A DNA stretch of 63,779 nucleotides, filler included, from Salisapilia sapeloensis CBS 127946 (taxonomy: Eukaryota; Protista; Oomycota): NCBI GenBank assembly GCA_023334545.1. It is 13 parts of 13 records of this genome, joined end to end, with 100 filler letters (N's around TTAATTAATTAA, not from the genome) between each part and the next. Parts side by side here need not be neighbours in the genome. Positions count along the whole stretch, not along the records: positions 12,550 to 15,114 come from JAADVB010000877.1; 12 more parts are not named here. The stretch is one strand, 5' to 3'. The notes below the pieces were generated by a model. It searched no databases. It was not told where the DNA came from and saw only the letters and a list, made by a program, of their open reading frames with translations. Positions 12,550 to 15,114 of this stretch are shown here, piece by piece; the first letter of the stretch is position 1; every line of letters starts with the position of its first letter. A program made the translations under genes and the position numbers.

Positions 12550-12690
12550 AGCGGTGGGCGTGGCCATTGATCAAAGTCCTTCTATAGCTATTCTGCATTG
12601 TGTAAGACTCCCATGTGAAACAAATAGATAACGTTCGACTATGCGTAGAAGAAATATAGTCTTAGAGAACTCATATGAAGCAAATATCAG
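12550..12690. repeat. Exact 141-bp inverted terminal repeat, left copy (partner 14974-15114)
   Basis: agcggtgggcg...caaatatcag is the exact reverse complement of 14974-15114; identity stops at 141 bp. Confidence 0.97.
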
Positions 12691-14973
12691 AAAAGCTTTA
12701 TAGTGGTAAATATTTAGTATGGTTTTATTTAATGTTACATTAAAAAGAAACTAAGAAAGAGTATTATCTCAAACGATTTAAATATGATGACAAACAAATA
12801 TAAGCATAATATTAGTATAAAGTTTGTGAAAAACCTTTTTTTTAGTATATATAAGACCTACAAGTACAGGTGTGTGATTGCATAAATTATCGTTTCGTAT
12901 ACATAGTACATGAATTTCCAGAAATAATAATATGCTTTTAAAAATAATATATAGAATTTGAAATAAACGAAGAGAGAAATTCGAATGGTGTATTTATTTT
13001 TTTTCCAATACTAAACAGTTCTAAATGTATTGTATATACAAATACGAAGTAGCAAACAGTATCATACAAAATAAAAACTATAGCACAGAACACTTAGATC
13101 ACAACTTGAACATAGTGCTTTAGCAAACATTAAATTTAAACTAATATTAAAGCTTGATAGAACGTTCTGCTTGCACTCATGCAAATATATGTTTGCTGTA
13201 AGTCGTACTAACTACTTACAATTGTAAAAACTTTTTTTAGTTCATAGTCTATTAAAAGACAATTTATAAATAACCAAACTCAATATCTATTTTATCAAAA
13301 GTTACAATGTTTTTTACGACAATTTTATTTGCTATAAAAGTTCTAGCTTAACAAAAGAAAAACGACAGCTCTAAACGTAGTAAACATACAAACATGTAAA
13401 CAATGCTATATTAATAAATATTTAAAAATCAAAAAACCACCAAGAAAAAATACACAATTGAGTTAAACTTTAACGTATAAAAAGCTTTGTTAATATAAAT
13501 AGAAATACACATTTTATATTTGTATTAAAGTGAATTGTATGTAGAGTTTTACTAATTTAATTGCATGTTTTATAAGAAATGAAATTACGTATAAATTAAC
13601 GCTATTTCTTATAAGAAACAAAAAACAAACAACTGAAAATACATTGTGTAAATATATGATAAAAATTATGTGTATATTTGTATAAAGCATTATGTTAGAA
13701 AGTTTTTACAACGTTATGATAGGCATTTTTTTTTACTTTAAATAGAATCTTTAGAATTTATTAAGAGATCAAACCTATTTACACACGTGCAATTTGTAAA
13801 CAATGTACATGAGATCAAATATTAAATTCACATTATTTATGGCAAACTAATACTGTTAGTTATAACAAAATTTATTTTTATATACAAGTAGTTTAGTTTT
13901 ATAAATGGTCTTAAATTGTACAATATTTTTTTTGTTTTTGTATGTACATTGTTTCTTTTTAAAACAGTCATATAAACTTCAAGTTTATTTATATTAATGC
14001 AGTATAATATGCAGACAAGAACTTTTAAAAGAGTTTTGGTGCATCAAATATATGAACATTTATTGCAATTTGACATGTTGCTTTTTCATCAAAACGTGTA
14101 ATTATTCATAACAAATTTCAGACTTATATGGGTATAAAATGGTCAACTGACATGCCACAACATGTTTAAGAGGGCAAATCGTTCATTGTCTTATTAGTTG
14201 CATAAATTTGTTTATATGAAGATAAATATGTATCCCAAAAAATTTTTATGCCTTATAATGTAAAGCATTTCGAAAACATTTGTAAAATGTTATTATTTTT
14301 ATAGTTTTTTATGTGAATTGTTCTAAAACTAGTATGTGTACAGTTATAAATAAGAAATATTTGTTATCTACTTGTTTTTGCATAAAATTGATTTTACGTA
14401 TTTTATTTTTGTGCATAAATATAAATGAAGTTTTTAAAGGACAATTTGCTTAGTTAAAATTAATTGATCTTTTTTTTGCCTTTGTCTTCTCACAATTGCG
14501 AACTCAATTTATGCTCTTAAATTTAGCTGATAAAACATATTTTAAACAAATTTCAAACGTATTCGTAAATGTCAACTGAAGAACTTTTTTTCATTATTAA
14601 ATATAGTTTCGTCTTATATATTTTGAAACACACAAGCTTCTTTAATTTTGATATAAAAAATTATAAGCAGTTTTAATCAAATGAAGTATACAGGCAGACA
14701 CTTGCTAACGTTAAATATTGTATGTAATTTTATGCTTTTTATAAATTATATGTTTTATTAAGTTACGTTGCACTTCAACAAGAATCATAATCTTTAGTTT
14801 ATTTTGTTTATATATTTTTGTTAATCAGTACTGTGTTTAAAGATTTTTAACATTGGGTTTTGTTTTGACATTACTTTTTTTAAATTTTAACAATATTAAA
14901 AATATGCAATGATATTTAACAATTTTCGTCACTTTGAATTTATATCGATGTTTTGCTCTAATAAGAATATTTC
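12691..14973. other. Very AT-rich non-coding core
   Basis: About 22% GC in a hand-counted 150-nt sample versus roughly 50% in coding regions; no ORF of 60 aa or more in the track; no tRNA or rRNA seen. Confidence 0.9.
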
Positions 14974-15114
14974 CTGATATTTGCTTCATATGAGTTCTCT
15001 AAGACTATATTTCTTCTACGCATAGTCGAACGTTATCTATTTGTTTCACATGGGAGTCTTACACAATGCAGAATAGCTATAGAAGGACTTTGATCAATGG
15101 CCACGCCCACCGCT
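14974..15114. repeat. Exact 141-bp inverted terminal repeat, right copy (partner 12550-12690)
   Basis: Direct sequence comparison. Confidence 0.97.

Follow-up and report, generated by a model that had tools for sequence, protein, structure and literature searches.

The 2565-nt contig JAADVB010000877.1 of Salisapilia sapeloensis CBS 127946 consists of a unique, AT-rich, non-coding core of 2283 nt enclosed by identical inverted arms, of which 141 nt are visible at each contig end. It was analysed as positions 12550-15114 of a stretch of 63,779 nt (filler included; hereafter, the window), and all coordinates count along the window. The core is tentatively interpreted as the inert non-coding spacer of a non-autonomous mobile element of the long-TIR or foldback type, or of a recent or homogenised inverted duplication, which is the likeliest of the readings weighed below. 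The original prediction had proposed a compact centromere. The features of the contig are:

12550..12690, + strand: left arm of the inverted repeat, visible over its inner 141 nt and truncated by the contig end; all 141 columns identical when aligned to the reverse-complemented right end; GC about 40%, 52% in the outer 40 nt.
12691..14973, no strand assigned: AT-rich non-coding unique core of 2283 nt; 20-29% GC; longest ORF 58 aa; without tRNA, Rfam family, tandem array or above-cut-off Pfam match; halves not palindromic.
13405..13975, no strand assigned: zone in which the AT skew changes sign, the + strand being A-rich on the left and T-rich on the right; seen in 570-nt and 200-nt windows.
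14974..15114, - strand: right repeat arm, which reverse-complements 12550-12690 exactly; likewise truncated by the contig end.

A repeat search of the piece returned inverted arms of 145 nt at 99% identity. When the left end was aligned to the reverse complement of the right end, 141 consecutive positions were identical, counted from the first and last base of the contig, with a mismatch at position 142 and chance-level identity beyond. As identity runs to the contig end without divergence, the repeat is cut by the contig end and its real length is at least 141 nt. The repeat itself is real, and the inner boundary between arm and core is real and sharp. Perfect inverted ends had been part of the original prediction, together with the view that the assembly hides the true length of the repeat. 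The alignment bears out the former and sharpens the latter, the identity reaching the contig ends and the visible length being 141 nt, the usual largest k of MEGAHIT.

A largest k-mer of 141 is the MEGAHIT default, and 'k-max 141' recurs together with MEGAHIT in the literature. A unique segment L placed between a sequence S and its reverse complement, rc(S), of length at least k, would in a de Bruijn graph form a loop that leaves and re-enters one node; printed as a contig, such a loop would carry a k-mer at one end and the reverse complement of that k-mer at the other. Given a largest k of 141, inverted ends of 141 nt that extend to the contig limits and stop sharply at position 142 are thus the expected output for a unique segment within an inverted repeat of length at least k, and the layout found here (2565 = 141 + 2283 + 141) fits a loop contig exactly. 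We infer that the 141-nt ends most probably represent the overlap that a loop contig has in the graph, and hence a property of the assembler rather than a measured repeat. The same signature suggests that the assembly was of the metagenome style. Other perfect 141-nt terminal repeats in the pieces of this genome, direct or inverted, are accordingly to be read as graph overlaps; as a general caution, inverted ends exactly as long as the k of the assembler are a graph signature and no measured repeat.

No ORF longer than 58 aa was found in the six frames of the piece. By hand arithmetic, about 9% of codons are stops at a GC near 24%, which gives about 460 stop-to-stop intervals, the longest of them expected near 65 codons; the piece is therefore as ORF-poor as random sequence of the same composition, and is non-coding. 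A Pfam scan of the ten longest ORF pieces returned only sub-threshold noise, and exact-product look-ups for the three longest ORFs found none on record. In the piece, ARAGORN detected no tRNA, the Rfam search gave no family at E≤1, and TRF reported only micro-arrays of two to three copies (scores 30-38). The absence of an Rfam, tRNA or tandem-array signal led to the rejection of an RNA gene, an rDNA spacer or a satellite. An AT-rich core lacking ORFs and RNA genes, as originally described, was thus recovered over the whole 2283 nt. Each arm also carries two short open frames, both within chance expectation: one (12551-12628 on the + strand, and its mirror image) reads inward and meets a stop after 26 codons, and the other (15066-15114 on the + strand, and its mirror image) starts with an ATG and reads outward, with 16 open codons up to the contig end. 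A gene in the unseen portion of the repeat might extend into the arm as either of these frames.

The core has about 22% GC (22-24% for the contig), with values of 0.20-0.29 in 200-nt windows; the first such window of the piece, at its left end, has 0.335, and 570-nt windows of the piece have 0.20-0.28. Along 12550-12730, and mirrored along 14934-15114, GC falls from 52% in the outer 40 nt to 35-40% further in, and then to 22% and 15% in the first core windows. This gradient places the edge of the AT-rich island approximately at the arm/core junction, where the repeat has its inner end; outward, the arm seems to continue into DNA of normal GC. As the GC of the arms (about 40%, and 52% at the outer end) differs from the 22% of the core, arms and core have different histories. 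The core is a complex AT-rich sequence and no simple poly-AT: no A/T-only run of at least 25 nt occurs in the piece, where shuffles give 2.0 ± 3.7 (mean, sd).

The AT skew of successive 570-nt windows was +0.12, +0.10, +0.12, +0.02, -0.07, -0.09, -0.13 and -0.13, and the same pattern was seen at 200 nt. Within 12835-14829 the skew is antisymmetric around the centre of the core, with values near +0.11 in the left part and near -0.11 in the right part, and this holds in windows that exclude the arms. By a hand estimate, based on about 650 A+T per 855-nt interior block, each side lies about 2.8 sd from zero and the difference between the sides amounts to about 4 sd. When the left half of the core was compared with the reverse complement of the right half, only chance-level identity was found, which rules out that the core is a decayed hairpin or palindrome. 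The core thus combines compositional dyad symmetry with a lack of sequence symmetry, a state that would be in keeping with divergent transcription or with an origin of replication at the centre.

The piece contains 38 CpG dinucleotides; about 28 of these fall in the core, where hand arithmetic from base frequencies predicts about 30, so that CpG is not depleted. Counts of CA+TG and AC+GT were 294 and 278, respectively, giving a (CpA+TpG)/(ApC+GpT) index of 1.06, where RIP is indicated by values clearly below about 1.03. With this index and undepleted CpG, a RIP-degraded fungal repeat (AT-isochore) was rejected. The telomere repeat TTTAGGG is absent from the piece, and a telomere was rejected for that reason.

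Arm identity of 100% beside a sharply unrelated interior is a typical trait of elements bounded by TIRs and of inverted duplications that are young or homogenised. The perfect inverted ends of 141 nt, perhaps not truly terminal, have the form of the terminal inverted repeats of a TIR or foldback transposon. The contig would then be a single-copy AT-rich loop, and the perfect inverted repeat whose arms enclose it would exceed the k-mer in length. Identity of the arms may stem from the youth of the structure or from gene conversion that homogenises them, and recombination between the arms could flip the spacer; the structure may belong to an organism other than the host of about 50% GC. That the spacer is inert is supported by the lack of any ORF beyond chance, of an RNA gene and of Pfam signal in the ten longest ORF pieces. 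Against the interpretation as an inert spacer, an interior of 22% GC would be unusual for a mobile element in a host of 50% GC, the antisymmetric AT skew of the unique core is left unexplained, and no second copy was found in the collections searched, which hold few eukaryotic genomes. In these searches, blastn found no match to the piece in plasmid and phage collections, and an exact 27-mer from the arm and an exact 24-mer from the core were absent from metagenome, GTDB genome and IMG/VR contigs; with so few eukaryotic genomes among them, such blanks say little.

Several mundane sources can yield a lone, short, AT-rich and ORF-free contig in an assembly of normal GC. One of these, of lesser but still substantial probability here, is a fragment of another AT-rich organism (a host, prey or co-cultured eukaryote) that was binned with the genome or retained in it, the inverted repeat being the TIR of a transposon of that organism or a local duplication. 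A contig of 22-24% GC is far from the genome average of about 50% given with the original prediction, and no gene in it ties it to any taxon. The k=141 signature of MEGAHIT, in pointing to a metagenome-style assembly, favours this origin as well, and mis-binning of short contigs is common in such assemblies. Moreover, oomycete assembly practice discards contigs below 25% GC as non-nuclear (PMC11139960). A foreign source is opposed by the outer arm, whose 52% GC hints at GC-normal flanks, by the lack of a donor match in the collections searched, and by the undepleted CpG, which makes vertebrate DNA, or heavily methylated plant DNA, a less likely source. Gene-like GC in the outer arm would suit a nuclear alternative, in which the inverted copies of a duplicated gene, arranged either head-to-head with a shared divergent upstream region or tail-to-tail, enclose a long AT-rich intergenic region. 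An ATG-started frame leads outward from each arm and the other frame inward, and both halves of the core are T-rich when read outward from the centre, as for divergent transcription units. Frames of 16 and 26 codons are, however, expected by chance in sequence of 40-50% GC and are too short to search, and we know of no 2.3-kb intergenic region at 22% GC in oomycete nuclear genomes, which makes this arrangement decidedly unlikely. An organellar source was also considered, namely oomycete mtDNA, as the small single-copy region between the arms of the large inverted repeat or as a non-coding, repeat-bounded insert of the kind found in some Phytophthora mitogenomes. Oomycete mtDNA has 19.0-23.4% GC, and small unique regions of 2,133-2,342 bp lie between large inverted repeats in Aphanomyces (PMC5093560); that of Pythium ultimum is 2,711 bp (PMC2926784). 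The unique region of 2,283 nt at about 22% GC agrees with this composition (19-23% GC) and with these sizes (about 2-3 kb; 2,133-2,711 bp), and a single-copy region bounded by an inverted repeat gives exactly the graph topology observed. Some Phytophthora mitogenomes are up to 33% non-coding and contain entirely non-coding repeats (PMC9020773), which suits an insert. What makes a mitochondrial origin very improbable is the lack of dense coding and of AT-rich arms. Coding sequence makes up about 90% of Aphanomyces mitogenomes, whose intergenic GC is 8-16% (PMC5093560) and whose small unique region carries nad11; the present piece has no ORF longer than 58 aa, tRNA, rRNA or Pfam remnant, and its arms, at 40-52% GC, are unlike mtDNA. 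Hand inspection of the contig end for a truncated tRNA found none that was convincing, no register having the invariant U8 or C61.

The original proposal, a compact regional centromere with a low-GC core between inverted repeats in a host of about 50% GC, would place CENP-A on the AT-rich core and use the homogenised arms as boundaries; on present analysis it is very unlikely. Its analogies were accurate. In the Komagataella phaffii centromere a 2-kb inverted repeat flanks a mid region of 1 kb, and Cse4 occupies the core (PMC5010909); a unique core between identical inverted arms matches that layout. Centromeres of diatoms, C. merolae and Plasmodium are low-GC regions of 2-4 kb, one per chromosome (10.1101/096016), with which every 200-nt window of the core, at ≤29% GC over 2.3 kb, can be compared. 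The prediction rule for diatom centromeres, 100-bp windows at or below about 32% GC in a region of at least 500 bp (PMC12227449), has its compositional counterpart here in core windows that are all at 0.20-0.29. The core is free of genes, the steep increase in GC toward the outer arm resembles an island edge, and the mid-core change of sign in AT skew would fit a central replication origin. Long contiguous AT windows are stressed in the diatom paper, whereas the piece, scanned for A/T-only runs of at least 25 nt rather than by the window definition of that paper, has none. Phytophthora sojae centromeres, cited in the original prediction as large and retroelement-rich, span 115 to >270 kb, have 52-58% GC like the genome, are enriched in Copia-like transposons and are heterochromatic (PMC7082073). 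This Copia-like type recurs in Globisporangium ultimum and Peronospora effusa (PMC11139960). Here a size above 100 kb, genome-like GC and Copia-like content are replaced by a 2.3-kb core that has about 22% GC and lacks any transposon-like ORF or Pfam match, and the presence of the large type in all mapped oomycete centromeres gives a compact centromere a low prior. Positive support for a centromere consists of composition and architecture, with the inverted repeat visible for 141 nt, and more than one ordinary explanation suits the contig just as well. It is at least as doubtful that the contig is one of a set of compact centromeres, of a type not described in oomycetes or other stramenopiles, that would join the low-GC rule of diatoms to the inverted-repeat layout of yeasts. 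If true, oomycete and stramenopile centromeres would not be uniformly large and transposon-based, and the core would offer a candidate element of 2-3 kb for stable episomes.

When set beside known systems, the contig has in common with the centromeres of K. phaffii and Candida tropicalis and, at a larger scale, Schizosaccharomyces pombe a unique, gene-free core, compact at a few kb, that lies between identical inverted arms. In K. phaffii and C. tropicalis, which belong to another lineage, the arms are of kb scale, whereas those found here are visible for 141 nt only, are identical throughout and run off the contig end. Phaeodactylum tricornutum, Cyanidioschyzon merolae and Plasmodium provide the other likeness, a non-repetitive, gene-free, low-GC island of a few kb, well under the threshold of about 32% GC. 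Descriptions of diatom-type centromeres mention no bounding inverted repeats; each chromosome has one such centromere, as shown by ChIP and episome maintenance. Phytophthora sojae centromeres are likewise poorly coding, and differ in size, GC and transposon content from the 2.3 kb at 22% GC without transposon remnant described here.

The small single-copy regions of Aphanomyces and Pythium mitochondria are alike in GC (about 22%), in length (2.1-2.7 kb) and in their identical inverted arms (PMC5093560, PMC2926784). Theirs is, however, a coding region (nad11) between AT-rich arms that carry rRNA and protein genes, whereas the core studied here is gene-free and its arms have 40-52% GC. For the non-autonomous DNA transposons with long TIRs (MULE-like and foldback elements), the contig differs in that it ends inside the repeat, so that termini and target-site duplications would lie beyond it, and in that the visible arm is without sub-repeats. 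It resembles these elements in its identical inverted repeats of more than 100 nt, in its AT-rich non-coding interior and in its overall length of a few kb.
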